The notes beneath the pieces are model-generated. The model did no database searches. It saw nothing but the letters and a program-made list of their open reading frames with translations, and had not been told where the DNA came from. The translations under genes were made by a program, and so were the position numbers. 64,000 nucleotides of DNA, from positions 62,001 through 126,000 of the IMG/VR virus record IMGVR_UViG_3300032770_000001, one strand, 5' to 3'. Below, piece by piece: positions 24,850 to 43,411 of this stretch (positions are counted from its first letter, which is position 1; the number at the start of each line of letters is the position of its first letter).

Positions 24850-24861
24850 TGGTGTTCTCTA

Positions 24862-25152
24862 ATGGCAGAAATTCGCTTAACGTTTAAGATCACGCTGACC
24901 AACGGCGAGGAAACTGAGCAAACGATTTCGGTTCCCGCAACCAACGATGCGCCGTTTGAACAACAGGTGATTTTCTGGATGAACAAGGCGCTGTCGCAGT
25001 ACGCTCAGGTGGGTCTGCTTCGTCAGACGGACAAGGACAAATTCCTGCTCCTATGCCCCAGCCAGATTGCATTCGTCGAGTGTCAACTACCTAGCATTGT
25101 GCTCGCCGGGGCTGGTGATGTTCCGGCAACCCCCAAGGTGACCCTTGATTAA
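24862..25152 (+). CDS. Hypothetical protein
   Basis: 96-aa ORF after nrdJ. Confidence 0.6.
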   Translation: MAEIRLTFKITLTNGEETEQTISVPATNDAPFEQQVIFWMNKALSQYAQVGLLRQTDKDKFLLLCPSQIAFVECQLPSIVLAGAGDVPATPKVTLD

Positions 25153-25324
25153 GCCACAGGGATTGAGCCTCGAATGGGTTCTGTGGCTGGTCGTTTTCAT
25201 CGGCGCGTATTACGCGATCCGTCCGGCTCCCGCCGCGTCGAAACCGTATCATCCTGATCCGGCAGCCGCATGGTGTGACGCTCCCCCAGTCGATGGGGCG
25301 GGCGCTCCGGCTGCATGTAATTGA
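25145..25324 (+). CDS. Small membrane protein
   Basis: TTG-start 59-aa ORF, MIKPQGLSLEWVLWLVVFIGAYYAI... Confidence 0.4.
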   Translation: MIKPQGLSLEWVLWLVVFIGAYYAIRPAPAASKPYHPDPAAAWCDAPPVDGAGAPAACN

Positions 25325-25341
25325 TTCTACAGCCGAAAATA

Positions 25342-25372
25342 CTATCCAAACTACGGGTTTCACTGGTAGAAT
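25342..25372 (+). promoter_or_regulatory. CTA(C/T)C-N20-TAGAAT promoter, probably leaderless
   Basis: CTATC at 25342, CTGGTAGAAT at 25363, ATG 6 nt after the hexamer. Confidence 0.55.
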
Positions 25373-25378
25373 AGAGAT

Positions 25379-26350
25379 ATGAACACACCAGTCATCGATG
25401 CCCTGCTTGCCAGCAACGCTGAAGGTAGCTCCCATTTCACCAAAAAGGATGCCTTTAACCAGCGGATGATTAACAACTTGCACGAGGCAGTTAAGGGTTT
25501 CGAGGGTGCGGTAGCCGCCAAGAAGATTTTCAACACCGAGTACAAGGACGGCTATTCGAGCATCAGCCGTGCGGTCGAGGAAGCGTTCGATGTTCAGAGT
25601 CAAGGTATCGCCGGGGATTTCCGTGCAGTGAGCCAAGGCTGGAATCGAGATAGCGACCCACGCATGTATCTCTGGTATCACCCCTCTTTCGCCAATGTCG
25701 GCGGGGCACTTAAGAAACTCCAGAAGTTCGAGGGCAAGGACAAGCTGGTCGATGCGTTCCTTCCGGTCCTGAAAGAAGCGGTTGCCCTGCTCGATCTCTG
25801 TAAGTCCGCGAAGCCTTTTATTGTCAAAGGTCGCAAGCCGAATCCGAACTATGTGCCGCCTGACATGACCAACACCGGGCACTGCGCGATCTGTGGCAAG
25901 CAACAGAAGTTGACCCCGGCTCAGAAGATGGTCGATCATGGATTTCAGATCAGCAACGGCGTGCACTACTTCGGTGCGCGTGTCGGCCACTGTTTCGGCG
26001 TCGGCTATGCTCCGTATCAGTTGTCGAACGAGGCCAACATCGCATTCAAGGCGTATCTGGAAAAGATGCTCAAGCAGACGCAGAAGAATCTGGCTGAGTT
26101 GAAGTCCGGCACAATCACCAAAGTCAACAGCACGAAGCGCGTGAAGGACGGGTTTAGCTGGAAAGACGAGCCCGTGGTTTATGTCAAGGGCAAAGATGAG
26201 CCCTTTTTCCAGCGTGAATTGGACTCTATGATTGACCGCGCCGAGTGGCAGGAAGATACCATCAAGTCTGATATCAAGCACAACGACGAAAAAATTGCGA
26301 ATTGGACACAGAAGCCACTTCCAGAGGGGCAGGTTCTCGGTATATTCTAG
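25379..26350 (+). CDS. Hypothetical phage protein
   Basis: 323 aa with GHCAICG...HGF...CFG Zn-like motif. Confidence 0.7.
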   Translation: MNTPVIDALLASNAEGSSHFTKKDAFNQRMINNLHEAVKGFEGAVAAKKIFNTEYKDGYSSISRAVEEAFDVQSQGIAGDFRAVSQGWNRDSDPRMYLWYHPSFANVGGALKKLQKFEGKDKLVDAFLPVLKEAVALLDLCKSAKPFIVKGRKPNPNYVPPDMTNTGHCAICGKQQKLTPAQKMVDHGFQISNGVHYFGARVGHCFGVGYAPYQLSNEANIAFKAYLEKMLKQTQKNLAELKSGTITKVNSTKRVKDGFSWKDEPVVYVKGKDEPFFQRELDSMIDRAEWQEDTIKSDIKHNDEKIANWTQKPLPEGQVLGIF

Positions 26351-26353
26351 GGT

Positions 26354-26983
26354 ATGGCATCTGCGGCAGTCGCCCCGGCGCGATTATATCGGGCTCTTAA
26401 CGATAAGGAACTCTCGCGGCGGTTCGCTAGCCGCCCTCTCCGTGCTTTGTTCGACGAAGCATACCACCGTCATCGCGATCAGATTTATCACGTCTGTTAC
26501 AGCTTCGTGCGCAATCAGGACGATGCCGAGGACATGGTCAGCCAGACCTTCCTGAAAGCGTGGAAGGGGCGCAAGGGTTTTCGAGCCGACGCCAAGTTCT
26601 CTACGTGGCTTCATCGAATCGCTGTCAACGAGTGTTTGATGTTCATTCGCAGCAAAAGCGCATTCGGCCACGATGCCCCCACGATCTCGCTGGACGCCGC
26701 AGTACCGAACACTGCCGGGGACGACTTCGTCAAGCCCGATGTTCCTCTCGATCCGCGCACGCTCGACCGCATGGTGGATCACCAGCAGCTACAGCGTGCT
26801 CTGCTCCGGCTGAGTGATGGTCAGCGGGAAGTGTTCGATCTGTATTTCTACAAGCAGCACACCATCGAAGAAATCCAGAAGAAATTAAAGCTGAGTGAGC
26901 CAGCGGTAAAGTCCCGCATTTTCCATGGGCGGCAGAAAGTCCTCCGGGCATTCGGTCGGCTGGATACAGCCGAGATGACCTAA
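26354..26983 (+). CDS. ECF-family RNA polymerase sigma factor
   Basis: Region 2 DAEDMVSQTFLKAW...FSTWLHRIAVNEC; region 4 LSDGQREVF...EIQKKLKLSEPAVKSRIFHGR. Confidence 0.9.
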   Translation: MASAAVAPARLYRALNDKELSRRFASRPLRALFDEAYHRHRDQIYHVCYSFVRNQDDAEDMVSQTFLKAWKGRKGFRADAKFSTWLHRIAVNECLMFIRSKSAFGHDAPTISLDAAVPNTAGDDFVKPDVPLDPRTLDRMVDHQQLQRALLRLSDGQREVFDLYFYKQHTIEEIQKKLKLSEPAVKSRIFHGRQKVLRAFGRLDTAEMT

Positions 26984-27009
26984 GTAACCCCAAAATAATT
27001 TTCAAAATC

Positions 27010-27040
27010 CTACCCTTTTCCCCGACCCGGCTGGTAGAAT
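27010..27040 (+). promoter_or_regulatory. CTACC-N20-TAGAAT promoter at the head of the RNA island
   Basis: CTACCCTTTT at 27010, CTGGTAGAAT at 27031. Confidence 0.6.
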
Positions 27041-27316
27041 GTGAGTGTAAAGGGACACCACGTTACGGGACGCAACGAGAGCCCGAACACGTAACTGGAG
27101 GTTGCTGCGCTTCCAGCGAATTGCCCGAACAGTTAGCGGCGTAACCATCTGCGGGGTGAACAGTATGAGAAACTAATTGCGGTGACCCATAACTGATTCG
27201 AACCAAGAAAAAATTATAGAAATTTCGCTCATGGGCTACGGCCCCGGAAACTACATCAACGGCTCCACCCCTTTCGAGTTGAAAATATCCTAGTCAGGGC
27301 TGGAGCCCCAATTTTT

Positions 27317-27433
27317 CGGCGGGAGCAACGAACGAGGTTCAAGACCTCGATCTTGCGTCTATGACGCGGGGTAGCTTGAATGGGTAGCTTCGGCGGCTGC
27401 GCTGATGCATCAGCGTTGTCCGTGCCCCCTCCG
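27317..27433 (+). ncRNA. Unassigned structured RNA
   Basis: Ends pair (CGGCGGGAGCA...TGCCCCCTCCG); internal arms TTCAAG/CTTGAA, GCGTC-tat-GACGC and CGCTGATGCATCAGCG. Confidence 0.35.
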
Positions 27434-27442
27434 CTTTATCTT

Positions 27443-27652
27443 ATGCACAAAATTCTCCACATCATCGAAGTCTGGTTCTCGGTGGCCGCGCTCTGGATAG
27501 TGTTCAAGGCATGGGCTGGTGGTTGTTTCGAGACGGGGCTGGAAGGCTGGCTTCTGCCGTGGGGCAAACCGAATCCCGGATGGGATGCGCCGACCGAGGA
27601 TGAGATGGAAGCTATGGGGTATGACCGATGGATTATCGAGTTGAAGTTTTAG
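27443..27652 (+). CDS. Small membrane protein
   Basis: MHKILHIIEVWFSVAALWIVFKAWAGG... Confidence 0.45.
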   Translation: MHKILHIIEVWFSVAALWIVFKAWAGGCFETGLEGWLLPWGKPNPGWDAPTEDEMEAMGYDRWIIELKF

Positions 27653-27783
27653 TTGACAACGTGGTGGTGAAGTGCAAGACTGATATTGCGCCGGGTAAGA
27701 TGCCGATAGAGGTCAAGAACCTCTCGCTGTGGGCGCAGTCGAACCGCTACTTGGCGTTCGACATCAAGGTAACAAAGGTTTAG
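27628..27783 (+). CDS. Small hypothetical protein
   Basis: 51 aa, MDYRVEVLVDNVVVKCKTDIAPGK... Confidence 0.4.
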   Translation: MDYRVEVLVDNVVVKCKTDIAPGKMPIEVKNLSLWAQSNRYLAFDIKVTKV

Positions 27784-27807
27784 CCAGCCGGGGCTGGCGT
27801 TTGAGGT

Positions 27808-27926
27808 TGGGGCGGTTCTATTTGCTGAATGAAGTGCCAACCGGGGAGACCCGGACTGAACGATAGATGGAACCACCATCATGATTGTTTTTGGGACTTT
27901 GTTGCAGGTGGTGTGCACCCGCCCCA
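27808..27926 (+). ncRNA. Unassigned structured RNA
   Basis: TGGGGCGG/CCGCCCCA closing stem; CCGGG-GAGA-CCCGG; ACCACC/GGTGGT. Confidence 0.35.
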
Positions 27927-27931
27927 CATTA

Positions 27932-28059
27932 TGCCGTGTCGTCTAGCTTGGTTAGGACGCTCACTGGAGCGAGGCTTCTGCGAAAAGGGCTATCGCTCAG
28001 TCCGAAGTAGTGGAGGTCTGGTGAGTGGACTTGGGTTCAAATCCTAAGCACGGCACCCA
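27932..28059 (+). ncRNA. tRNA-like RNA with a 56-nt branched insert in place of the anticodon loop
   Basis: Acceptor TGCCGTG/CACGGCA plus CCA, D-arm, CTCAC/GTGAG stem, T-loop TTCAAAT. Confidence 0.65.
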
Positions 28060-28162
28060 ATTTCTTAACTACGGTATTAGATAGTGTAAGCCCGGATGTG
28101 ACCGCTGCTCTGCATGTTCTCCGGGCGCTAGGAAAGCTGCCCGGTGGTGTCAGGCCGGGTCA

Positions 28163-28238
28163 GGGCGTGTAGTTCAGTTGGGAGAGCGGTTGCTTTGCAA
28201 GCAACAGGTCATCGGTTCGATCCCGTTCACGTCCACCA
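28163..28238 (+). tRNA. tRNA-Ala(TGC)
   Basis: Cloverleaf, G3:U70, encoded CCA. Confidence 0.95.
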
Positions 28239-28246
28239 AGTTTAGA

Positions 28247-28388
28247 TCGGAGCCGTCATCGAAGATCGGGATGCAGGTGGTTCGAATCCCCGGACGGCGA
28301 TAATCACGCGGAGCGGGTTGAGCCGGGTGAACAACAGGCATGGTGCTGAAATCTACCGGGTTCGATGTCCCGGCTGTTGTGCCGATCA
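28247..28388 (+). ncRNA. Unassigned RNA with two T-loop-like modules
   Basis: GATCGG/CCGATC closure; GGTTCGAATCC inside GCCGTC/GACGGC; CCGGG-TTCGATGT-CCCGG inside ACAACAG/CTGTTGT. Confidence 0.5.
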
Positions 28389-28390
28389 AT

Positions 28391-28564
28391 TTTGAAGCGG
28401 TGACCGTAGTGGGAACGGGTGCGAGGGAAATTCTGCACCAGTCGAAAGACCGTGGAGTGGAGTGAATCTGGTTTGTTCCTGTAGGATTGGGCAACCCTTC
28501 CGGGATTAGGGCAAGCTGGTGACACCAGAAACGCTACCGAAGTACCAGCAGGAATCGCTTCAAA
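28391..28564 (+). ncRNA. Unassigned multi-branched structured RNA (about 175 nt)
   Basis: TTTGAAGCGGT/ATCGCTTCAAA closure; GGGAAC/GTTCCT, GTGC/GCAC, GTC-GAAA-GAC and CTGGTGACACCAG elements. Confidence 0.5.
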
Positions 28565-28570
28565 TTTTTC

Positions 28571-28897
28571 GTGCAGGGTAAACCGCCGTATACGACCAAG
28601 GCTCATTTGAGACGCGGGATAGCGGTTATTGGCAAGGGAGAGCCGGAGAATCGGAACCCGTTTGGAGCCTACTGCACGACTCTTTTTATGCAGACGCCGA
28701 AACTGGTTTACGACTTCATCCGCAGCCGGGTGTACATCGCGACTCGATACACCGAGGACGCAATCGGGCGGATCAAGGTGCTGGAGAAGCACGACGTGAC
28801 CGAGGACTTCGATGGTATTGCGGTCCGGCGCGGATTCTGGGAAGAGACCGAGGTCGGGCAGCAAACCAGAGAGAAATTTGCAGCAGCCGAAAAATAA
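28571..28897 (+). CDS. Hypothetical protein
   Basis: 108-aa ORF filling the gap before the attenuator promoter. Confidence 0.5.
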   Translation: MQGKPPYTTKAHLRRGIAVIGKGEPENRNPFGAYCTTLFMQTPKLVYDFIRSRVYIATRYTEDAIGRIKVLEKHDVTEDFDGIAVRRGFWEETEVGQQTREKFAAAEK

Positions 28898-28900
28898 TTG

Positions 28901-28929
28901 TTGTAAGTTTTCCGAATATCTGGTACTAT
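28901..28929 (+). promoter_or_regulatory. Sigma70-type promoter of the tRNA operon
   Basis: TTGTAA-N17-TACTAT with an extended -10 TG. Confidence 0.75.
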
Positions 28930-28959
28930 GTATTAGACAGTGAATTTCCGAGAGGCATT

Positions 28960-29091
28960 ATGAACTTCAACTTCACCAACGCGGGATGGCAGACGGGCGC
29001 TGTAGGCGCGGTCGCCGCCGTGTGTGAAGCTGAAGGTATTGTCGCCGCAGGAGCGGCGGATAGCGTGCCCTCGGAGGGTTGGGATGATTAA
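28960..29091 (+). CDS. Attenuator leader peptide (43 aa, GNN-codon rich)
   Basis: GAGG RBS; MNFNFTNAGWQTGAVGAVAAVCEAEGIVAAGAADSVPSEGWDD; 27 of 43 codons are GNN. Confidence 0.75.
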   Translation: MNFNFTNAGWQTGAVGAVAAVCEAEGIVAAGAADSVPSEGWDD

Positions 29092-29120
29092 GTAACTCCC
29101 AATCAGAGACTTCCGAGGGC
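29067..29120 (+). promoter_or_regulatory. Antiterminator hairpin (2:3)
   Basis: GCCCTCGGAGG pairs with CTTCCGAGGGC; inner GTTGGGA/TCCCAAT; overlaps the terminator 5' arm. Confidence 0.75.
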
Positions 29121-29148
29121 GACCTGAAAAGGTCGCCTTTAGTTTTTT
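29115..29148 (+). terminator. Intrinsic terminator (3:4) of the attenuator
   Basis: GAGGGCGACCT-GAAA-AGGTCGCCTTT followed by AGTTTTTT. Confidence 0.85.
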
Positions 29149-29159
29149 GCAGTAGATGT

Positions 29160-29239
29160 TGCCCGGTGGAGTGAGTGGCCGAAACCCCTTCTCTTACAAA
29201 GAAGGCTTACCGCTGGTTCGAATCCAGTCCGGGCAACCA
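29160..29239 (+). tRNA. tRNA-Val(TAC), atypical body
   Basis: TGCCCGG/CCGGGCA acceptor, loop CT-TAC-AA, T-loop TTCGAAT, CCA. Confidence 0.85.
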
Positions 29240-29242
29240 GAT

Positions 29243-29319
29243 GCGGGATTAGCTCAGGCTGGTAGAGCGGTTCGTTGCCAACGAACAGGTCGAGGGTTCA
29301 AATCCCTCATCCCGCCCCA
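29243..29319 (+). tRNA. tRNA-Gly(GCC)
   Basis: Cloverleaf, loop TT-GCC-AA, C73, CCA. Confidence 0.92.
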
Positions 29320-29334
29320 AGTTTAGGAGTGAAT

Positions 29335-29550
29335 GTGAAACGCAGCAGACAACGTATCGTGAAGCTGGTGACGACCGTGGAGGTCGAGAAGCATGATTGG
29401 GGATTCCAAGTGAATCACCCGACGTTGGGTCTGGTTGCGACTGCTGACACCGAGGATGAAGCCCTGTCCAAGATGGACAAGATGGTTGTTCGGCAGCTTG
29501 AGTTTGATCTGGCGCACGCGAAAGCGAAGCCAGCAAAGATGGGCCGCTAG
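29335..29550 (+). CDS. HicB-like small protein
   Basis: AGGAG RBS; VEVEKHDWGFQVNHPTLGLVATADTEDEALSKM resembles the HicB N-terminal domain. Confidence 0.55.
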   Translation: MKRSRQRIVKLVTTVEVEKHDWGFQVNHPTLGLVATADTEDEALSKMDKMVVRQLEFDLAHAKAKPAKMGR

Positions 29551-29615
29551 CATAACTGGGAATGCATCGCACTTGCAATGCGAAGGAACGGGTTCGAATC
29601 CCGGCGTGTCCACCA
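29541..29615 (+). tRNA. tRNA-Ala(TGC), divergent (bulged acceptor stem)
   Basis: Loop CT-TGC-AA, G3:U70, CCA. Confidence 0.8.
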
Positions 29616-29632
29616 AGTTCAGATGTACCTGT

Positions 29633-29705
29633 AGTGGCTTAGCCAAGTGGTAAGGCGACCCTCTGCAAAAGGGTTAATGCGCGGGTTCGATTCCCGCAGC
29701 CACGT
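29633..29705 (+). tRNA. tRNA-Cys(GCA), no encoded CCA
   Basis: ACCCT-CTGCAAA-AGGGT; U73; 1:72 mismatch. Confidence 0.8.
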
Positions 29706-29706
29706 C

Positions 29707-29783
29707 GGGGTGTTGGAGGAGTTGGAGTCCTCGCCTCCCTGTCACGGAGGAGATCGCGGGTTCGAGGCCCGTACACCCCGCCA
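29707..29783 (+). tRNA. tRNA-Asp(GTC)
   Basis: Cloverleaf, G73, CCA. Confidence 0.92.
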
Positions 29784-29801
29784 AGTTTGAAGTAGAAGTT
29801 C

Positions 29802-29878
29802 GGTGACGTACCATAATTGGCTAATGGGCTCCCCTGTCACGGGAGAATATGGGGGTTCGAGTCCCCTCGTCACCGCCA
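29802..29878 (+). tRNA. tRNA-Asp(GTC)
   Basis: Cloverleaf, G73, CCA. Confidence 0.92.
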
Positions 29879-29880
29879 AC

Positions 29881-29955
29881 GCATCCGTGGCGAAACGGGA
29901 ACGCGGCGGTCTGCAAAACCGTCATGAGTCGGCTCGACACCGACCGGGTGCTCCA
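29881..29955 (+). tRNA. tRNA-Cys(GCA)
   Basis: Cloverleaf, U73, CCA; atypical T-loop CTCGACA. Confidence 0.88.
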
Positions 29956-29961
29956 AGATTG

Positions 29962-30114
29962 ATGCGGCGAAAAATACAATTCGCGATGCTTTGGATAGCA
30001 AAGCGGTTGAGAGCCGCAGCAGACAGTGTTGAGAAACACGCCCCAGTCGTAAATGAGGGGCGACCGACGCTGGAAGATTTGATGTTAGAGAATCGCCGAG
30101 GCGATTTGAAATAG
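29962..30114 (+). CDS. Small hypothetical protein
   Basis: 50 aa, MRRKIQFAMLWIAKRL... Confidence 0.4.
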   Translation: MRRKIQFAMLWIAKRLRAAADSVEKHAPVVNEGRPTLEDLMLENRRGDLK

Positions 30115-30126
30115 TTCTTTTACAGT

Positions 30127-30500
30127 TTGTGTCAGTGCCGGACGGTCGCGAGTGGCGTTTGTTTCAGCAGGCGTCATTCGAGGAAAGTCGGGGCACCACA
30201 GGATGGCGTACCAGAGAGACACTGGGCTCCGGTGTGCTTGGAAGCGTCGGCGAAAGCCTTCCCAACCAAGTCCCCGGATGACGATTAGAGCAACAGAGAC
30301 GAGTCGGCGTTAGTACCGCAGCACGGGCTGCGGAGGCCGGGTGAAACGGGCAATCTCTACGCGGTGCAAGCGCAAATAGGCCGACAGGAGTGATCCGCTC
30401 CGTTATGAATCGGCGGGTAGCGTGCTTGAGCGTTACGGCGACGTAACGCCTAGAGGAATGATCGTCCTCGACAGAACCCCGCTTACAGGGCTGACACAAA
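30127..30500 (+). ncRNA. rnpB: RNase P RNA (bacterial type A-like)
   Basis: GAGGAAAGTCGGGGC, GGGTGAAACGGGC, TAGAGGAATG and ACAGAACCCCGCTTA signatures; P1 TTTGTGTCAG/CTGACACAAA. Confidence 0.95.
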
Positions 30501-30508
30501 ATTGATGG

Positions 30509-30583
30509 GCGGGTGAGGTATAACTGGTGGTGCCGTGGGCCTCCAACCCACTGAGGCAGGTTCAATTCCTGTCACCCGCTCCA
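30509..30583 (+). tRNA. tRNA-Gly(TCC), atypical (A8, C33)
   Basis: GTGGG-CCTCCAA-CCCAC; U73; CCA. Confidence 0.85.
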
Positions 30584-30584
30584 T

Positions 30585-30661
30585 GCGACCATAGTTCAGT
30601 CTGGTAGAATGCTTCCTTGCCATGGAAGAGGTCGAGGGTTCAAATCCCTCTGGTCGCTCCA
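30585..30661 (+). tRNA. tRNA-Gly(GCC)
   Basis: Cloverleaf, loop TT-GCC-AT, CCA. Confidence 0.95.
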
Positions 30662-30674
30662 GATTTTAGTTGTA

Positions 30675-30726
30675 CGGGTTCGGCTAATCGGAGCCGAGTG
30701 AACGCGAGATACCCTTCTCGCACCCG
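30675..30726 (+). ncRNA. Small three-way-junction RNA element
   Basis: CGGGT/ACCCG enclosing TCGGCT/AGCCGA and GCGAGA/TCTCGC hairpins. Confidence 0.4.
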
Positions 30727-30728
30727 AC

Positions 30729-30804
30729 GCGGGAATAGCTCAGTTGGTAGAGTGCGTGCTTCCCAAGCATGAGGTCGTGGGTTCAAGTCCCATTTCCCGC
30801 TCCA
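30729..30804 (+). tRNA. tRNA-Gly(CCC)
   Basis: Canonical cloverleaf, CCA. Confidence 0.95.
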
Positions 30805-30826
30805 AGTTTTTGTGGTATCATGTAGT

Positions 30827-31228
30827 GTGGCGAATACTACATTCAAAGGTGAGATTGCCGTCCAGAAGGTGATTCTTCGGGCAATCGAAAAAGATGTAAT
30901 CGCAAGCAAGCCTGTCGTTGAAGGTTGCCGTTACGATCTGGTTTTAGATGTTGATGGGTTGAAGAGAACCCAAGTGAAGTATGCTGGACAGACTAGGAAT
31001 GGTGCAATAAAAGTTTCGGTTGCATCACAAGATAGCCGGGGCAAGAAAGGTAAGCGATACGGAGAGCATGAAGTCGATCTCATAATCGCGTATTCTCCGA
31101 TCACGGGAAAGTTTTACAAACTCCCACCCGAAGTCTGGCGAGGGAAAAGGTTGCTTCACCTACGATACGAGCCATCGAAGAACAACCAAAAGATGGGTTG
31201 TTTCGATGCGAGAGATTTTGAGTGGTAA
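30827..31228 (+). CDS. PD-(D/E)XK endonuclease (I-Ssp6803I-like, free-standing)
   Basis: KGEIAV...YDLVLD...QVKY motif; TATCAT hexamer 5 nt before the GTG. Confidence 0.8.
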   Translation: MANTTFKGEIAVQKVILRAIEKDVIASKPVVEGCRYDLVLDVDGLKRTQVKYAGQTRNGAIKVSVASQDSRGKKGKRYGEHEVDLIIAYSPITGKFYKLPPEVWRGKRLLHLRYEPSKNNQKMGCFDARDFEW

Positions 31229-31235
31229 CAAGTTC

Positions 31236-31311
31236 GGGCCTATGGCGCAGTTGGGAGCGCGTTTCCATGGCATGGAAAAGGTCGTGAGTTCGAATCTCAC
31301 TAGGTCCACCA
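31236..31311 (+). tRNA. tRNA-Ala(GGC)
   Basis: G3:U70, A32/U38, CCA. Confidence 0.95.
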
Positions 31312-31314
31312 AGT

Positions 31315-31445
31315 TTGGCGAGCGTCCGAGTTGACGTGCTCGAAGGCTGCAACCTTCCACGTTGACTGGCTCTGGCGAGTAACGGACGGAAACGCGGATC
31401 AGCTTGCAGGCTCCCGTGGAGAGGGGTTCGATTCCTCCTCGTTAA
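31315..31445 (+). ncRNA. tRNA-like RNA with a greatly expanded first arm
   Basis: TTGGCGAG/CTCGTTAA closure; CGTCCG/CGGACG long arm; terminal T-arm GGGG-TTCGATT-CCTC. Confidence 0.5.
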
Positions 31446-31503
31446 ATTTTCAGCGGTTTTATTACGTATTATAAAACCGCGTTTGACTGAAATTTTATAG
31501 CGT

Positions 31504-31580
31504 GGCCCATTCTTCTACGCTGGTTAGGAAAGCGGCCCTTCAAGCCGAAAAAGGGGGATCGTCGCCCCCATGGGCTACCA
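31504..31580 (+). tRNA. tRNA-Glu(TTC), divergent (C33, T-loop ATCGTCG)
   Basis: GGCCCAT/ATGGGCT acceptor, loop CC-TTC-AA, CCA. Confidence 0.75.
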
Positions 31581-31588
31581 AATTTTGA

Positions 31589-31666
31589 GTGCTGTTAGCT
31601 CAGTCTGGTTAGAGCGGTTGCTTCACACGCAACAGGTCGGGGGTTTAAATCCCTCACGGCACACCA
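31589..31666 (+). tRNA. tRNA-Val(CAC)
   Basis: Cloverleaf; T-loop TTTAAAT; CCA. Confidence 0.9.
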
Positions 31667-31674
31667 AGTTCGTT

Positions 31675-31827
31675 ATGGAAAAGTTACTTCGCAAAATCGG
31701 GGAATGGTTGAAAGAGTGGGAGTGCAAGCATCCTTCTCTCGTTTGGTCTCGTCTCATTAAAGTGGGAAAGCGTATGGGACGCATGTGTCCTGATTGCGAA
31801 ATGTTCATTGAAGATTTGGGCGTGTAG
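31675..31827 (+). CDS. Small Zn-binding hypothetical protein
   Basis: 50 aa with CKH...CPDC. Confidence 0.45.
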   Translation: MEKLLRKIGEWLKEWECKHPSLVWSRLIKVGKRMGRMCPDCEMFIEDLGV

Positions 31828-31893
31828 TTCAGTTGGGAGAACGCTTCCCTCGCACGGAAGAGGTCACGAGTTCAACTCTCGTCACGTCCACCA
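31818..31893 (+). tRNA. tRNA-Ala(CGC)
   Basis: G3:U70, CCA. Confidence 0.95.
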
Positions 31894-31897
31894 GTTT

Positions 31898-31958
31898 TAC
31901 GGATGCCTAGAAGTTGGAGGCACGCAATATCAGCGGCGGGTTCGATGTCCGCTCCGTA
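31898..31958 (+). ncRNA. 61-nt mini-cloverleaf tRNA-like RNA
   Basis: TACGGA/TCCGTA; TGCCT/AGGCA; CGC-AATATCA-GCG; GCGGG-TTCGATG-TCCGC. Confidence 0.55.
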
Positions 31959-31959
31959 T

Positions 31960-32035
31960 GCGCGGCTAGCTCAGTGGTTAGAGCACTTGCTTGACACGCA
32001 AGAGGTCGCAGGTTCGAGTCCTGCGCTGCGCACCA
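31960..32035 (+). tRNA. tRNA-Val(GAC)
   Basis: Canonical cloverleaf, CCA. Confidence 0.95.
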
Positions 32036-32040
32036 AGTTT

Positions 32041-32127
32041 GGAAGTGTAGCTCAATTCAGGAGAGCAACATACGACGCCGCGAGGCGCACGTGGCATGTG
32101 GTGCAGTGAGAGGCTCACCCACTTCCA
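32041..32127 (+). ncRNA. tRNA-like RNA lacking an anticodon loop
   Basis: GGAAGTG/CACTTCC acceptor, normal D-arm, extended arm capped by GCC-GCGA-GGC, degenerate T-arm. Confidence 0.55.
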
Positions 32128-32139
32128 AAGTTTTTGTAC

Positions 32140-32287
32140 CGGGTTGGTGGGGGAATATATCGAATACCCCCATGCGGTGTCGATGACGCGGCTGCTATCG
32201 CTAAACGCGGCACTGCTTTGTGACAACCCTGATCGAAGCGGCTGCATAATGCCCCGTCCATAGCAGTGGATGGTCAAAAGCAGCCGT
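32140..32287 (+). ncRNA. Unassigned structured RNA(s)
   Basis: GGGTTG/CAACCC junction with two arms, then a CGGCTGC/GCAGCCG hairpin. Confidence 0.35.
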
Positions 32288-32296
32288 AGAGTTTAC

Positions 32297-32370
32297 GGCC
32301 CTATCTTCTAGTGGCAGGAAACCCGACTCTCAATCGGAAAACGCGAGTTCGATTCTCGCTAGGGCTACCA
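32297..32370 (+). tRNA. tRNA-Glu(CTC)
   Basis: Cloverleaf, loop CT-CTC-AA, CCA. Confidence 0.92.
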
Positions 32371-32595
32371 TAATCTGAACTTCGGCAGGTCGGCAGGACG
32401 CCGAAGATTTCCAAGGCGACGGGCTCTCGTCGCCTTTCTTGCGACCGCAGGACATCCCGTAATCATGGGGGAACACCGGGGCGGGTCACCTTGACCTCCC
32501 GATAGGGCATTCCGCAGGTCACCGTATTTGGCTACCTGACCGCAACCGTAGTAGCAGAGGATGTCTCCGGTGTGGTCTTCGATGAGTTTGCCCAT
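32365..32595 (-). CDS. Small Cys-containing hypothetical protein
   Basis: CYYGCG...CSPMITGCP. Confidence 0.45.
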   Translation of the reverse strand: MGKLIEDHTGDILCYYGCGQVAKYGDLRNALSGGQGDPPRCSPMITGCPAVARKATRARRLGNLRRPADLPKFRLW

Positions 32596-32753
32596 ACTGA
32601 AGGTTTCTGTATTGGGCTATCGTAAAAAGCGGGTTGCTCCGCTTTCCACGCTGTGTATCCCACGCCGAGAAATACAACCACCACTACCGAGATCAACGTG
32701 TTTCGTAGTAAAATGTAGATTCGTCCCAGTTTCATCAGTTCGTTTGAGTCCAT
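32532..32753 (-). CDS. Small membrane protein
   Basis: AGGAGG RBS; one hydrophobic helix. Confidence 0.45.
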   Translation of the reverse strand: MDSNELMKLGRIYILLRNTLISVVVVVFLGVGYTAWKAEQPAFYDSPIQKPSVWANSSKTTPETSSATTVAVR

Positions 32754-32998
32754 GTGAATCCTCCTAGTTGATAAGTCGCTCGGACGGGGCAAAACGCACC
32801 ATCCGTTAAAAATAAATCGCACGACAAGGTCGAAGTGTTACACCCTGTCGAGGATAAGTACGTTGGCGGGGTCATTTTCTCCCGGCTCTTCAGAGATATA
32901 AACGGATGAGACGGGTAAATCTTTGCACGATATTTTCGCTCCACTAGGAATATGCGTGGGCGGGGCAAATCCTTACATTTTCGGGTATTAAATCTACA

Positions 32999-33742
32999 GT
33001 GAAACTCCAACTCATCAGCGATCTGCATACCGAGTTCTACGACATGCCCAAGGTCCACCAGATTCCTCTGGCGAAGGACGTGGACGTGCTCGTGATCGCA
33101 GGTGATCTGATTGTTCCTTCCCGGCAGCATCCCAAGGTGGTGCAGAAGGTCATCCAGTATTGGGCGGACAAGGTGGGACATATCCTGTACGTGTCCGGCA
33201 ACCACGAGTATTACGGTGGTCGTCGAGAAGAGGTCGAGTTCAAGTTGCGGTCGTGGATGCCGAGAAATTTTATCTGGCTCTACAACGATGAGATCACCAT
33301 CAACGGACAGCATTTCTACGGCGGTACGATGTGGTTTAAGCCGGAGCCGTTGAACCAGCTTTACGAGAGCAGTCTGGCGGACTTCTCTGAGATTCATGGC
33401 GATTTCCGCAAGTGGGTGTATGAGGAGAACGCCTTGTTCCGGGAGAATGCCATGAAAGTGGTGACTGAGAATTCGGTCGTGATCTCTCACCATCTGCCGC
33501 ACCCCAGATCAACGCCGTTGCAGTTCATGGGCAGTCCGATCAACCGCTTCTTCGTGTCGGATGAGTCATATCTGATCGAACAGAAACAGCCGAAGCTCTG
33601 GTTGCATGGACACACGCACCACTGGTGCGATTACAATCTTGGCAATACCCGCGTTCTCTGTTACCCTTTCGGTTACCCACATGAGCGACCGAAGCTTCCG
33701 GAGAAACAACAAAATTACGAACCTGAGGTAGTGGAATTATGA
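32999..33742 (+). CDS. Calcineurin-like metallophosphoesterase
   Basis: SDLH, AGD, GNHE, SHH and HGHTH motifs. Confidence 0.9.
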   Translation: MKLQLISDLHTEFYDMPKVHQIPLAKDVDVLVIAGDLIVPSRQHPKVVQKVIQYWADKVGHILYVSGNHEYYGGRREEVEFKLRSWMPRNFIWLYNDEITINGQHFYGGTMWFKPEPLNQLYESSLADFSEIHGDFRKWVYEENALFRENAMKVVTENSVVISHHLPHPRSTPLQFMGSPINRFFVSDESYLIEQKQPKLWLHGHTHHWCDYNLGNTRVLCYPFGYPHERPKLPEKQQNYEPEVVEL

Positions 33743-33957
33743 ATCGTGAACACGTAGGACAGGGCGCACGCAAGGCGGCACGCCGCAAGCTTCGTCACGC
33801 TCTTCGCAAAACCAAACTGGCTGAACTTAGCCGCCTGCATCTGTTCTCTCCCGCAGCCCTGAAGTTTCAGGCTCGCATTGCTGTGGATCGCGAGCTATCG
33901 CAGGGTTCCACTGACAAGAACGCGCACGGTCGCGGTTTGGTGAGAAAGAATGCCTAG
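33739..33957 (+). CDS. Small basic hypothetical protein
   Basis: ATGA-coupled 72-aa ORF. Confidence 0.5.
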   Translation: MNREHVGQGARKAARRKLRHALRKTKLAELSRLHLFSPAALKFQARIAVDRELSQGSTDKNAHGRGLVRKNA

Positions 33958-34111
33958 CGATCACGCCAAGATCAGCTACCTCAAGAGTGCCATACGCATT
34001 CTCGCGGCGGCGTGTCTGTTCGGTGTCGATCATCACCCACTCATCTGGGTATTTGCGGTGCTGTTTATCATCGCCGAGATCATCGGCATCATTGAGGAAT
34101 TCGGACATTGA
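33950..34111 (+). CDS. Small membrane protein
   Basis: 53 aa, MPSDHAKISYLKSAIRILAAACLFG...LIWVFAVLFIIAEIIGIIEE. Confidence 0.55.
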   Translation: MPSDHAKISYLKSAIRILAAACLFGVDHHPLIWVFAVLFIIAEIIGIIEEFGH

Positions 34112-34557
34112 GACCTGCGCAACAAATTCCGACTGACCCGCAGCGGCAGTTGATGCAGACTCTCTGCCTGTTCATCAAGAAATATGGCGTGAAGTGTGAT
34201 CTCGGCTACGCGGTCGAGGTTTCGTTCGACAAATTGGAAGAAGTAGCCCTGCAAGCTCAATTGCAGGTGGATCGGGGAATTAACGGCGTCGTTATTCGAT
34301 ATTTCCCGAATATTACAATCGAGGGGGAACTATCTGATGGTGGACGCACTCAACCTGCCGAAACAACCGAAACGAATGAGCAAGACCGATCTGGAGTGGT
34401 GGATTCTGTTCGGAATCGCCGTCGCCGGAAAGGGCGCAAAGCAAACGCAAGAAAAAATGCGAGTGTTCCTGTCGGACATTCCGAATCCGAGAATCAGCGG
34501 CTCGACGACCTCGGACACGGTGATGGCGGAATTCCGAAAGACGGCGACCCCGTTTGA
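34108..34557 (+). CDS. Hypothetical protein
   Basis: Coupled to the upstream ORF; 3' half overlaps the glycosylase gene. Confidence 0.4.
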   Translation: MRPAQQIPTDPQRQLMQTLCLFIKKYGVKCDLGYAVEVSFDKLEEVALQAQLQVDRGINGVVIRYFPNITIEGELSDGGRTQPAETTETNEQDRSGVVDSVRNRRRRKGRKANARKNASVPVGHSESENQRLDDLGHGDGGIPKDGDPV

Positions 34558-34993
34558 GCGCGTTCGCTACCTGATCTCCGAAGGCAAACTGCTCTCCCAG
34601 ATGCGAAAGCACAAGCTGGGGAAATACAAACTTTTCAACAAGGCATTTCGTTCAGCCATCAAACTTGATCTGGACACCATCACGGTCGAGGCTCTTGAAC
34701 AAATACCCGGAATCGGTCCGAAGACCGCTCGTATGGTCGCCATGTACGGCTTTCCGGATACTTGCGGCGATGTGGCGGTTCTGGACACCCACATTCTGAA
34801 GTGGCTCCGGCTAAAAGGTTACAATGCTCCTAAATCCACCCCACAAGCCGGGAAGAAATACCTGACGCTGGAGCAAGCTTTTATCGCCGAGGCGAAGAAG
34901 GAAGGCAAGACCCCAGCCGAACTAGACACCGAGATTTGGCAGGCTTACGCCATAAAGCCCGGTTTTACCGACAGTTACGAACAATCCGCCTAA
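34337..34993 (+). CDS. HhH DNA glycosylase/AP lyase (8-oxoguanine glycosylase OGG2-like)
   Basis: LEQIPGIGPKTA HhH motif with catalytic K; VAVLDTHI; KYLTLE; AELDTEIW. Confidence 0.8.
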   Translation: MVDALNLPKQPKRMSKTDLEWWILFGIAVAGKGAKQTQEKMRVFLSDIPNPRISGSTTSDTVMAEFRKTATPFERVRYLISEGKLLSQMRKHKLGKYKLFNKAFRSAIKLDLDTITVEALEQIPGIGPKTARMVAMYGFPDTCGDVAVLDTHILKWLRLKGYNAPKSTPQAGKKYLTLEQAFIAEAKKEGKTPAELDTEIWQAYAIKPGFTDSYEQSA

Positions 34994-35044
34994 CGTGATT
35001 CGCTAGTCCGACTTCGGGGCTCTTTTCATAGGAGCCCTGAATAG

Positions 35045-35710
35045 ATGCCCGTCCGTCTTTCCATTGCCAAACTTGCCGCTTCAGCCGTCGCCCCGCTGAC
35101 GACAACTCCCCAGTTTTCAAACGCTTTGCTGGAATCCGGAGCGACGTGGGCTCAGGATGTGAACTATCTCCGTGACACCTACATGGAAATTCACTCCATC
35201 TGGGAGCGTCTGAAAGACCCCTCGCAGGATAAACAACTCTACACCGAGACCGAACCCCACCTTCGTGAACTGCTCCTCGGCTTGGAAGACGTGAGTAAGC
35301 AGGTCACCAGTCGTGGTGACGTGTATCGGGACGTGACCAATGCCAGCCACGATGCTGAAATTGCCGGATCGTATGCTTCGGCTGAAGACTACGGGCTTGC
35401 TACGGTCTATCAGTCCTACGCCATGATGAAACTTCATCGAGTGCTCGATTCCCTCACTGCCATGGCGAACAAGAGAAAGCACGGCAGCCGAAAAGTTGGC
35501 TATGGGTACGATGTTAGTGGAGAAGTTCAAGAAGGCGGCGGCACCAGCGGTCAAGACAACCATCTGTGGGACTCGGCACAGCCGCAGGATCATCACGAAA
35601 CAAAACCCAGCCCGGTGAATCTGGAGACTGATTTCGAAGCGGAGCAGGATTTCCCAGAGTTGGCCGAATTTAAGAGCAAGCGGGTTGAATTCCCGGCGAG
35701 GATGAGTTAA
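35045..35710 (+). CDS. Hypothetical protein
   Basis: 221 aa with RBS; heads the fibre operon. Confidence 0.6.
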   Translation: MPVRLSIAKLAASAVAPLTTTPQFSNALLESGATWAQDVNYLRDTYMEIHSIWERLKDPSQDKQLYTETEPHLRELLLGLEDVSKQVTSRGDVYRDVTNASHDAEIAGSYASAEDYGLATVYQSYAMMKLHRVLDSLTAMANKRKHGSRKVGYGYDVSGEVQEGGGTSGQDNHLWDSAQPQDHHETKPSPVNLETDFEAEQDFPELAEFKSKRVEFPARMS

Positions 35711-37365
35711 TGCCGAATCCGACAAGAGTTATAGTTTTCAACACAACTGATGCACCCGCTGCTCCGGCGATTCCTCTTCAGACGAACTCCCACCTGATGG
35801 ACATTGTCACCGCAGTAGACGGCGTAATCCAGCCGACACCCGGCCCGTCTGCCGCAGGCGTTCCGGTCGTGCTCAACCCCGCTGGTGTTATCGATCCCAG
35901 CCTGATTAACGCTGGTAGCAAGAACACGGTTGATACTGGCGGTGTGACTAGTGGACAGTTGGTCGGTATCTACGTTCCAACGAGCGGTCCGTACATCGGT
36001 CAACTAACGATTCAGCCAGCGACAGCGAACCCAACAGGTGTTGGTGAGACGGCTCCGGCACCACCGTCTGGCTATCCGCTGGCAGCGGCGGGTTTTGTCT
36101 CAGCATCCGGGCTTGCTGGCACCACGGCAACAGTTTCGTTTTACGGCACATTCAACTACAACGACCCACTGAGTGAGTTTTCCGCATCGTCCATCGGTAT
36201 GCAGGTGTACCTTGCCGACTCCGGCGACGGATCACATGGCGTCGGAGCTATCACCCTAACGCTGCCGAGCGCACCCGGAACGCTCAAACAGGCGGTCGGT
36301 ATCGTGGTCGCCTACAATTCGGGTGTCGTCACGTGCGAATTCGTTCCATCATTCCCCGGCAGCATTCCGGTTACATTCGGTAACGTACTGGCAGGTACCA
36401 ACACAGGTCAAGCTCTCGTGGTCGGTACGGGATCGACTCTATCATTTTCCGGTTCCGGCACCATTAACGCAAATCAGATCACCGGAGACCCGGTCAATAC
36501 ATCCGGTCGAACGAGTGGACAGGCTCTTATTTGGAGCGGTACCGCATGGGCTCCAGCAACAGTTTCGGCGGCTCCGGGCGGTTCTAACGGACAGCTTCAG
36601 TTCAATAACTCCGGCTCTTTTGGTGGGGCGTCCAACAGCAGTGTGGGCGGTACGGGTGCTGTCGTGCTTGGCAACGTCAATGACCCCAGTCCCGTTTCGA
36701 CAACCGCATTTACCGTCAGTGCTTCTGGTGGTATCGCCATCTCCGCTCAAGACTGGTATAGCTCGAACGAAGGTTTCATTGTCGCAAACATGCAGACTAG
36801 TGGTCTGTTGAATGTTCAGGGCATCAATATCCAGAGCAGCATTTCCATCGGGGCAGTTCCGCCGCTAGTCGTTCATGGAGGTAATGCAGGCAGCCCGGAC
36901 ATCGCAGATTTTATTACAGCCGTTGGCGGCACACCATCCAACGTCAAGACCGTTTGGATCGATTACAACGGCAACTTGAACCTCGGCGGCGGTGGAAGCG
37001 GCGGCATCAAGGACAGTACAGGATCACTGGGCACTTCCGGGCAGGCGCTCACAACAACTGGAACTCAAGTTCTCTGGGCTTCCGCTGATACCAGTGTGAA
37101 CATGCGGTCGCAGCGTTTTTCCGCAGGCGCGGTCGCCGCTGGGACTTTTGCCGGGCCGTTCTCGATCACCTTTTCTCCGGCATACGCGGACAACAACTAC
37201 ACCGCTGAAATCAGCGTTGAGCTTGATACTGACGCTGGGTTTGCACCCGTGGTGACTGGTGGGTTTACAAAGCAAGCCGCAGGAGCGGGAATCAACGTGA
37301 CGGTGATGAACAACGACAGTAGCTCACATAACGTGACTATTCACGTAATAGCGAGGCACGACTAA
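35710..37365 (+). CDS. Tail fibre/virion structural protein
   Basis: G/S/T-rich; GQALIWSGTAWAP and PGGSNGQLQFNNSGSFGG fibre motifs. Confidence 0.75.
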   Translation: MPNPTRVIVFNTTDAPAAPAIPLQTNSHLMDIVTAVDGVIQPTPGPSAAGVPVVLNPAGVIDPSLINAGSKNTVDTGGVTSGQLVGIYVPTSGPYIGQLTIQPATANPTGVGETAPAPPSGYPLAAAGFVSASGLAGTTATVSFYGTFNYNDPLSEFSASSIGMQVYLADSGDGSHGVGAITLTLPSAPGTLKQAVGIVVAYNSGVVTCEFVPSFPGSIPVTFGNVLAGTNTGQALVVGTGSTLSFSGSGTINANQITGDPVNTSGRTSGQALIWSGTAWAPATVSAAPGGSNGQLQFNNSGSFGGASNSSVGGTGAVVLGNVNDPSPVSTTAFTVSASGGIAISAQDWYSSNEGFIVANMQTSGLLNVQGINIQSSISIGAVPPLVVHGGNAGSPDIADFITAVGGTPSNVKTVWIDYNGNLNLGGGGSGGIKDSTGSLGTSGQALTTTGTQVLWASADTSVNMRSQRFSAGAVAAGTFAGPFSITFSPAYADNNYTAEISVELDTDAGFAPVVTGGFTKQAAGAGINVTVMNNDSSSHNVTIHVIARHD

Positions 37366-40307: not shown

Positions 40308-40308
40308 C

Positions 40309-42156: not shown

Positions 42157-42535
42157 TATGGCATATAGTGTTGGGGCAATTCAAACCGCGATAGTATCGC
42201 TGTCCGCTGCGGACATCGGCAACCTTTATGCAACGCCGAAGGTGGTCGTTAACGCACCGGGTGCGGGATTCTTTATCTGCCCGTTGACTGCGTATTTCCA
42301 ATTCTACCCCGGTACGCAGCAGTACGGACAGAGACATCTGCCAGTCATCACCGAGATTGCTGGTGACACCGGGAACAGAAACATGGTTGCGCTGTGCAGC
42401 TTTGAAGGCAGCACGGAAATCGGTGCTATTTGGGTTGCGACCGATAATGTGCTGGAAAGAAGCGTCTTGCGCTGAGGCGAAGAAACTCAGCAGTGAACAC
42501 AACAGGGCGAGAACTCCGAAACGGAGCTTTGTCAT
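42116..42535 (-). CDS. Possibly truncated secreted protein
   Basis: AGGAG RBS; signal peptide MTKLRFGVLALLCSLLSFFASA-Q. Confidence 0.35.
   Translation of the reverse strand: MTKLRFGVLALLCSLLSFFASAQDASFQHIIGRNPNSTDFRAAFKAAQRNHVSVPGVTSNLGDDWQMSLSVLLRTGVELEIRSQRADKESRTRCVNDHLRRCIKVADVRSGQRYYRGLNCPNTICHISKSTIEFRPIAP
42158..42475 (+). CDS. Possibly truncated structural protein
   Basis: Structural-like composition up to about 42328, then overlaps an antisense ORF. Confidence 0.35.
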   Translation: MAYSVGAIQTAIVSLSAADIGNLYATPKVVVNAPGAGFFICPLTAYFQFYPGTQQYGQRHLPVITEIAGDTGNRNMVALCSFEGSTEIGAIWVATDNVLERSVLR

Positions 42536-42682
42536 TCTTTGTTTTCTCCTGAAAGGATTTGAAGCTTTTGAGAGGTCGGGAACCGCGCACTCCTTCCCCT
42601 ACCCCAATAAGATAACATCTCTACACCCCCATGTCAAGCTTATTTTTGATAAAGTTAGCGGGAATTTCGGGTATTAAATAAC

Positions 42683-43339: not shown

Positions 43340-43375
43340 GTCATTGATTTTATGGACAATATTCAAGGCGATCCG

Positions 43376-43406
43376 CTACCTTTTTTCGAAGGCGAACAGG
43401 TAGAAT
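43376..43406 (+). promoter_or_regulatory. CTACC-N20-TAGAAT promoter
   Basis: Same spacing as at 27010 and 46298; in-frame GTG 5 nt downstream. Confidence 0.55.
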
Positions 43407-43411
43407 ATAGT

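Follow-up and report, generated by a model that had tools for sequence, protein, structure and literature searches.

RNase P trims the front end of every tRNA, and its RNA subunit (RPR, the product of rnpB) is among the very few ribozymes that are universal in cellular life; the presence of its gene has been taken to mark a genome as cellular or organellar. Among organelles, rnpB is encoded by plastid, cyanelle and some mitochondrial genomes. [quoted passage not shown] 2021, PMC8172020). In Mycobacterium austroafricanum and M. sp. YC-RL4, extra rnpB-like genes whose specificity domains are altered have been described, with an endonuclease gene between the copies and a suspected horizontal acquisition (Behra et al. 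2022, PMC9569102). The tRNA cluster of phage T4 is processed by host RNase P (PMC11143913), phage tmRNAs are known (PMC8172020, PMC9569102), and theta (HDV-like) ribozymes located beside phage tRNAs were proposed to free phage tRNA 3' processing from host RNases (PMC10879173). An Rfam scan of megaphages yielded only tRNAs and one tmRNA, and a genome-completeness protocol uses the presence of the RPR to separate bacteria from megaphages (PMC8172020). No mention of a phage-encoded RPR was found in the open-access literature that was searched, a set that included a 2024 review of RNase P and the main papers on huge and jumbo phages; paywalled work was not covered.

The RPR gene presented here is located in a stretch of 64,000 nucleotides (the window) corresponding to positions 62001-126000 of a viral contig, 64 kb of 456 kb (14%). 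Its RNA shares the catalytic core, the P4 pseudoknot, CR-I to CR-V, the P15 GGU loop and P18 with the bacterial class A RPRs (RF00010) that lack P13/P14; unlike these, it is phage-encoded, embedded in a tRNA array and extended in P9. The mycobacterial extra genes are also rnpB-like, with changes in the specificity domain, but they are found in bacterial genomes, no phage assignment or tRNA-array context was described for them, and their function was left open (PMC9569102). The arrangement also recalls that of organelles, whose small, dependent genomes retain the RNA subunit beside tRNA genes of their own while the protein comes from outside; organelles, however, are vertically inherited endosymbionts, whereas the carrier here is a virus and several independent captures are inferred. 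Theta ribozymes and phage tmRNAs are, like this RPR, phage-encoded structured RNAs linked to tRNA clusters. Theta ribozymes, however, are small and self-cleaving and act in cis on 3' trailers, whereas the RPR is a universal trans-acting ribozyme of 5' processing. As in T4, polycistronic phage pre-tRNAs need RNase P, but T4 relies entirely on the host enzyme while the phage described here encodes the catalytic RNA itself.

RPR genes in tRNA arrays are recurrent in huge phages and apparently undescribed, although an earlier description is not ruled out. The translation toolkit of viruses (tRNAs, tmRNA, synthetases, ribosomal proteins) would thereby extend to a tRNA-maturation ribozyme. These loci offer a testable model for the maturation of long phage tRNA arrays and a set of natural, diverged and minimised RPR variants for structure-function work, and they are a caution that rnpB is unsafe as a cellular marker in binning.

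The RNase P RNA gene and the tRNA array around it

An Rfam cmscan of the whole window gave a single RNase P match, to RF00010 (RNaseP_bact_a) at 30128-30502 (+). The match scored 167.1 bits, relative to a gathering score of 100 (E 4e-52), and covered model positions 1-367 without truncation. Helices were read off the model alignment and local folds, and were then verified pair by pair. The features of the gene were as follows.

30128-30502, + strand: RNase P RNA gene, bacterial type A without P13/P14 (cmscan RF00010, helices checked pair-wise)
30128-30135 paired with 30491-30498, + strand: P1 (helix check)
30185-30193, + strand: 5' strand of P4 in CR-I, AAGUCGGGG, U 30188 bulged (model alignment, pair check)
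30228-30278, + strand: P9 extension capped by a GAAA tetraloop (52-nt cmscan insertion, fold, alignment with the RPR of locus L262)
30293-30346, + strand: core of the specificity domain, comprising CR-II, P12 (30304-30340) and CR-III, with P11' directly after (model alignment, folds)
30370-30423, + strand: P15-P16-P17 with the L15 GGU at 30416-30418 (model alignment, folds, pair check)
30430-30449, + strand: P18, 8 bp, with a GCGA (GNRA-type) loop (model alignment, folds)
30477-30484, + strand: 3' strand of P4 in CR-V, CCCCGCUU, within ACAGAACCCCGCUUA (model alignment, pair check)

The RNA is closed by P1/P2 (30128-30147 paired with 30460-30498), and its mature 3' end is probably near 30498, as judged from the P1 pairing. 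P3 forms a hairpin 9 to 13 bp long, and P5, P7, P8, P10/11 and P12 are present. P4, the long-range helix that class A RPRs form between CR-I (GAGGAAAGUC...) and CR-V (ACAGAACCC.GCUUA), has 8 Watson-Crick pairs here, with U 30188 bulged. CR-I to CR-V, the GCAA of J5/15, the GGU of L15 and the GNRA loop of P18 are all retained. P15, P16 and P17 are present with the L15 GGU, and these helices covary. In type A enzymes the GGU of L15 binds the tRNA 3' CCA; binding of CCA by the phage RNA is inferred, without binding data. CR-II (ACAGAGAC, 30293-30300, ACAGAAA-like, in J11/12) and CR-III (GGGUGAAA, 30339-30346) were both recognised in the specificity domain. As P11' directly follows CR-III, P13/P14 are absent: 43 model positions are deleted and only 16 nt separate GGGUGAAAC from the GCAA of J5/15. 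A class B assignment (RF00011, with P5.1, P10.1 and P15.1 replacing P13, P14, P16 and P17) was not supported, class A being the best match in the clan and P16 and P17 being present. The identity of the RNA and the integrity of its catalytic core are shown; catalysis is inferred from sequence.

The P9 element comprises 52 nt compared with about 10 in the consensus, and folds as a long irregular hairpin (-22.1 kcal/mol, z -2.8). An observation related to this extension is that the window RPR and that of L262 have GGUGUG.UUGGAAGC ... UCCCAACCAA in common, the other parts of the insert varying in length. This shared sequence suggests a conserved added module, of unidentified role.

The RPR gene lies within an array of tRNA genes, with the following local features.

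26354-26983, + strand: sigma-70 family factor, just upstream of the array (Pfam Sigma70_r2 and Sigma70_r4)
28163-32370, all + strand: tRNA array, 16 genes around the RPR (ARAGORN, Rfam)
29881-29955, + strand: tRNA-Cys(GCA), the conserved upstream neighbour of the RPR (ARAGORN, synteny)
29956-30127, + strand: tRNA-Cys/RPR spacer, 172 nt, ending in AGUUU (sequence, synteny)
30509-30583, + strand: tRNA-Gly(UCC), the conserved downstream neighbour of the RPR (ARAGORN, synteny)
30812-31228, + strand: PD-(D/E)XK endonuclease gene, between array tRNAs (Pfam PF11645, E 1e-21)

The array encodes tRNAs for Ala (four), Gly (four), Val (three), Asp (two), Cys (two) and Glu (one). CCA is encoded by 15/16 of these genes, which matches the L15 GGU kept by the RPR. 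The tRNA-Cys/RPR spacer is 172 nt long in the window phage versus about 5 nt in its relatives. Neither a tRNA nor a convincing promoter or terminator was found in this spacer when the array region was scanned, and the sigma-70 promoter scan of the same region returned 4 sites against 3.3 expected, which is chance level. The sigma-70 factor gene is about 1.2 kb upstream of the first tRNA of the standard scan (28163), a position kept in the related locus L238 at 30% identity, and it is conceivable that its product drives transcription of the array. The PD-(D/E)XK gene could be a homing-type mobile gene.

Several minor observations were made in the array. AGUU, mostly as AGUUU, is found straight after CCA in about 10 of the 16 tRNAs (e.g. 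28239, 29320, 29784, 30805, 31312, 32036), and AGUUU also abuts P1 of the RPR on its 5' side (30124-30128); an AGUUU context fits the preference of RNase E (RN|WUU). Atypical tRNAs were noted at 29160-29239, 29541-29612, 29633-29706 and 29881-29955. A tRNA-Val(TAC) has a U1-A72 start and a degenerate D arm, the acceptor stem of an Ala(UGC) is mismatched, one Cys(GCA), with A1/G72 and without CCA, directly adjoins the tRNA that follows, and the T loop of the other Cys is unusual. A tRNA-Arg(TCT) with a 51-nt insertion in the anticodon loop was predicted at 27932-28059 (+) by ARAGORN with introns allowed, and was absent from the standard scan and from the Rfam results. Two more tRNA-like T-arm fragments were seen at approximately 28240-28300 and 28330-28385. 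At 29115-29140 (+), after a small ORF (28961-29092) and 20 nt before tRNA-Val(TAC), there is a strong hairpin of 11 bp with a T-run behind it, resembling a terminator.

A sequence-only reading had placed a full-length rnpB-type gene with compensatory P4 pairing at 30127-30500, inside a tRNA operon described as attenuated, with induced tRNAs. The ends of the cmscan match differ from these by no more than 2 bases, and the rnpB-type identity was confirmed by the covariance-model match above the gathering score. The P4 pairing held (30185-30193 with 30477-30484), the pair at 63-353 being a compensatory flip, and the location inside a tRNA array was supported by ARAGORN and by synteny in relatives. 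The description as full-length held only in part; the model span is complete, but with 43 model positions (P13/P14) deleted the type A structure is not. The only observation related to attenuation or induction was the hairpin at 29115-29140 upstream of tRNA-Val, which was probably the basis of the word attenuated. The further claim that several tRNAs have atypical arms was correct for some of them, without any sign that they need a special RNase P.

The carrier phage and related RNAs in other viral contigs

Window positions 23065-36050 are identical to locus L011, part of the 455,708-bp contig IMGVR_UViG_3300032770_000001. PHROG and Pfam matches in the window included a DnaB-like helicase, a ribonucleotide reductase (RNR), a second helicase, a UvsX-like recombinase, an exonuclease and a sigma-70 factor, and the majority of the ORFs were without a family assignment in these two collections. 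The only GenBank phage match of a 485-aa ORF (12114-13571) was the 'lytic tail protein' of Tunturiibacter phage Tunturi_5 (37% aa identity), a cultured jumbo phage of 308,711 bp with an Acidobacteriota host, and the helicase encoded at 43352-45160 also matched Tunturi_5 (44%). Window 2661-24849 is collinear with Tunturi_5 in gene order and gene size. The Tunturi_5 order is tail assembly chaperone, tape measure, lytic tail protein, structural protein, tail protein, tail fibre and structural protein, followed by divergently transcribed replication genes and RNR; in 2661-24849, the sequence comparison was limited to a single tail protein. Neither a capsid nor a terminase gene was present within the 64-kb window. 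With a tail module, replication genes and a contig of more than 200 kb, the element was classed as a tailed huge phage (Caudoviricetes), and the tailed-phage identity held on the contig match and on the matches to and collinearity with Tunturi_5. In Tunturi_5, tRNA clusters and a CCA-adding enzyme are located at 215-240 kb, and the 44 kb examined yielded no RPR. A blastn search with the RPRs of the window and of L166 against 50,697 GenBank phage records detected, at that sensitivity, no RPR in a cultured phage; the only hits were short matches to two Acinetobacter phage MD-2021a contigs and to a Salmonella chromosome record filed among the phages. A weak match to RNase T / DEDD exonucleases (PF00929, 25 bits) was also noted in the window at 51459-52193 (+), the product of which might serve in proofreading or trim RNA 3' ends.

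Two motif scans of IMG/VR were performed, and the candidates were examined with Rfam, nhmmer and ARAGORN. An RPR in or directly beside a tRNA array was found in the contigs behind L166 (463 kb), L197 (100 kb), L174 / L238 (171 kb), L210 (98 kb), L003 / L022 (74 / 205 kb), L010 (162 kb), L001 / L016 (77 / 31 kb), L032 (31 kb), L005 (7 kb), L217 (24 kb), L236 and L237, and in L020 (252 kb) the RPR was 2.2 kb away from the array. A clade-specific motif added L260, L261 and L262 (contigs of 155, 177 and 100 kb). None of 120 bacterial rnpB loci from a genome collection had the RPR in a tRNA array, and among 120 metagenome loci with the specificity-domain motif of the clade there was one such case, which was the 463-kb phage contig. 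Many further IMG/VR rnpB matches were without an array and were located in short or prophage-edge contigs; these resemble host flanks of prophage calls.

The order tRNA-Cys(GCA), RPR, tRNA-Gly(UCC) is kept in the window, L340, L197, L238 and L210, with RPR-tRNA spacers of 4-6 nt on each side in L340, L197 and L238. The genes of window 32999-45160 have counterparts in L340 at 42-60% identity, and L238 shares with the window the RNR (71%), the two ORFs after it and the sigma factor (30%). As the position is conserved while the flanking proteins, where comparable, have diverged to 30-71% identity, the RPR has been inherited along with the locus.

Two further observations concern the arrays and a divergent member. 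The arrays of the clade (window, L340, L197, L238, L262) consist near-exclusively of tRNAs that read GNN codons (Val, Ala, Asp, Glu, Gly) and of tRNA-Cys, with one extra tRNA-Phe in L197, as though arrays were sorted by first codon base; other arrays are presumably located elsewhere in the genome. In L261 (1600-1935 of that locus; IMGVR_UViG_3300049215_000227, 176,504 bp), the array-embedded RPR has GGAACUUCGCGG in CR-I instead of GGAAAGUCCGGG, and this alteration is matched by changes in the 3' strand of P4. It could be either a highly divergent active form or a decaying copy.

The RPRs nearest to that of the window were those of L166/L340, L262, L197 and L174, with 63-69% identity in the three measured, and the bacterial RPRs sampled had 56-60% identity to it, none exceeding 60%. 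In a maximum-likelihood tree of 90 RPRs the five phage RPRs grouped together (SH-aLRT of 86 for the whole group and 95 for its four inner members), the window RPR being on a long terminal branch (0.51). Covariation was assessed on 52 pairs from ten helices in these five RPRs, with the window structure based on Rfam. Canonical pairs were found in 257/259 cells (99%), and 24 pairs had changes on both sides. In the control, in which the 3' partner was slid by 1 to 3 columns, only 31-46% of the cells paired and 2-5 pairs had double changes. RNAalifold applied to the clade alignment recovered unaided P1, P3, P4, P5, P7, P8, P10/11, P12 and P15 to P18, with 43/77 pairs compensatory. In P4, the window and L262 have G-C at pair 63-353 where L166, L197, L174 and the consensus have C-G, and pair 65-351 is A-U in L262, so that two P4 positions covary within the clade; in P18, 7/8 pairs had compensatory changes within the clade. 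This covariation of P4 and the other helices is the pattern of a functioning RNA, as a decaying copy would lose it.

A second group with high G+C (L010, L005, L032 and L001) formed a separate clade in the tree. In L010, L001 and L032 the RPR is directly upstream of tRNA-Thr(GGU), with tRNA-Gly(GCC) on the opposite side in L010 and L001. L210, L020 and L003 were placed elsewhere in the RPR tree. The label 'in an array' changed five times on the tree, and at least two of these changes were forced by well-supported branches, which indicates that the RPR has been captured by phages more than once.

Protein partner, proposed role and rival explanations

No RnpA gene (PF00825) was detected by Pfam among the approximately 60 ORFs of the window, which represents 14% of the contig. 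An RnpA profile built from 50 diverse proteins, biased towards Proteobacteria, was compared with six-frame translations of the window and of the other viral RPR loci with their flanks, and gave no hit, the best E-value being 2.8. The sequence-only reading that no RnpA gene is visible in the window therefore held on both searches. Its proposal that the host protein is used is the simplest reading, with 86% of the contig (392 kb) outside the searched window. Bacterial RnpA proteins work with RPRs of other species, and a dedicated phage protein is therefore not needed. It is inferred that the RPR probably pairs with the host RnpA; a phage RnpA or cofactor encoded outside the window is not excluded.

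The phage context, the conserved position in related phages and the structural covariation are shown. The explanation we consider best is that the RPR is co-transcribed with the phage tRNAs, excised by the enzymes that process tRNAs and combined with the host protein to process the phage pre-tRNAs. This explanation is probable as a whole, but transcription, processing, the partner, catalysis and the benefit are all inferred. The spacers of only a few nt in L340, L197 and L238 imply that the RPR there is part of the array transcript, and co-transcription is strongly inferred from the 4-6 nt RPR-tRNA spacing in these three relatives. The array would be transcribed as long precursors. Cleavage by RNase P, initially that of the host, at the 5' end of tRNA-Gly(UCC) (30509) would free the 3' end of the RPR and leave a 10-nt tail beyond P1 (30499-30508). 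The 5' side would be set by 3' processing of the upstream tRNA at the AG/UUU trailer motif, which is also found directly before the RPR, and the ordinary tRNA 3'-end pathway would trim this side as well. The released RPR would then bind an RnpA-type protein, most simply that of the host because none is encoded in the window. RNase P capacity would in this way grow alongside the burst of phage pre-tRNAs, almost every one of which has the CCA recognised by the L15 GGU. The earlier interpretation overall, in which the co-transcribed RPR supplies 5' maturation for the phage tRNAs, is supported and essentially right, although this maturation is inferred and there are no activity data.

Several points stand against this explanation. 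No expression or activity data lie behind the proposed role, and the loss of P13/P14 together with the P9 extension might alter folding or activity. With 172 nt between tRNA-Cys and the RPR, against about 5 nt in relatives, the RPR of the window phage may have a promoter of its own or a partial terminator. The host is unidentified, so that compatibility with its RnpA cannot be judged. The need of a phage for an extra RPR is also unexplained, since the RPR is a stable RNA that is not known to be in short supply.

A functional RPR might instead be joined by a phage protein encoded outside the window, either an RnpA homologue or an unrelated cofactor, to give a complete phage RNase P. Only 14% of the contig is visible, most window ORFs are without a family, and huge phages carry many translation-related proteins (Al-Shayeb 2020, PMC7162821). 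There was, however, no RnpA signal in the window or in the flanks of the other phage RPR loci, and the cross-species activity of RnpA makes a dedicated protein unneeded; we regard this alternative as unlikely. There is still less support for the RPR being a drifting passenger, captured with host tRNA genes or via a mobile endonuclease and without a role in infection. In its favour are the PD-(D/E)XK endonuclease gene in the array, the mycobacterial extra copies near an endonuclease gene that were ascribed to horizontal transfer (PMC9569102), the long terminal branch of the window RPR (0.51) and the strongly altered CR-I of L261. Against it, position and structure are conserved although the flanking proteins are only 30-71% identical, 99% of the cells are canonical with 24 compensatory pairs, and the core motifs are all intact.

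It is similarly doubtful that the RPR mainly diverts the host protein subunit, whether by re-targeting RNase P to packed or atypical phage precursors or by starving host tRNA maturation. The specificity domain is indeed altered (P13/P14 absent, P9 extended), the acceptor, D or T arm is weak in several tRNAs of the array, and tRNAs are 0-3 nt apart. The form without P13/P14 is, however, also found in ordinary chromosomal RPRs; CR-II and CR-III, which bind the T loop, are kept, and there is no evidence from a direct test. Bacterial DNA mis-assembled or mis-binned into a viral contig can be practically dismissed. Many IMG/VR rnpB matches are in short or prophage-edge contigs without a tRNA array, but the window has tail genes on one side of the RPR and phage replication genes on both, the arrangement is repeated in independently assembled contigs, and the 463-kb relative is present in viral and metagenome collections alike.

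The preferred reading, that of an RPR made with the tRNA array and used with the host protein, can be taken further. The evidence leans slightly towards a bolder version, in which huge phages have repeatedly captured the RPR and wired it into tRNA arrays, whose processing would release it; in its boldest form, the RPR would act without a host-specific partner, alone or with a phage protein. If the bolder reading is true, infection brings in a catalytic RNA that belongs to the core translation apparatus and is made by the virus, and in the boldest form the phage tRNA supply would be independent of host RNase P.

Donor and origin of the architecture

Chromosomal RPRs of about 300 nt without P13/P14 were found in two Chloroflexota MAG contigs (L055 and L130; 191-194 bits), and among the 70 parsable loci with the motif ACAGAGACGAGUCG...GGGUGAAAC, phage loci included, 68 lacked P13/P14. 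A class A RPR without these helices is hence not peculiar to phages.

Two leads on the donor were rejected. The G-C pair at 63-353 of P4 was dropped as a donor mark, as it is present in Acidimicrobiales, Clostridium, Coriobacteriia and Chloroflexota and varies inside the phage clade. An Acidobacteriota donor, suggested by Tunturi_5, was not supported, as the sole acidobacterial RPR sampled (L058) has P13/P14 and is elsewhere in the tree. The only cultured relative, Tunturi_5, infects an acidobacterium but is distant, and both the donor and the host remain undetermined. The chromosomal RPR nearest to the phage clade in the tree was that of L297, also a metagenome contig sharing the motif; it adjoins an lpoA gene, the named homologues of which are from Betaproteobacteria and Rhodocyclaceae.

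A separate observation was made on isolate-genome contigs of the prophage type, namely L025 (311-658 and 12978-13349) and the contig of L021 and L028 (both IMGVR_UViG_2648501702_000002). Each carries two RPR matches, a standard one of 272 bits and a divergent one of 115 or 192 bits, and these doubles may correspond to the extra RPR copies known from mycobacteria.
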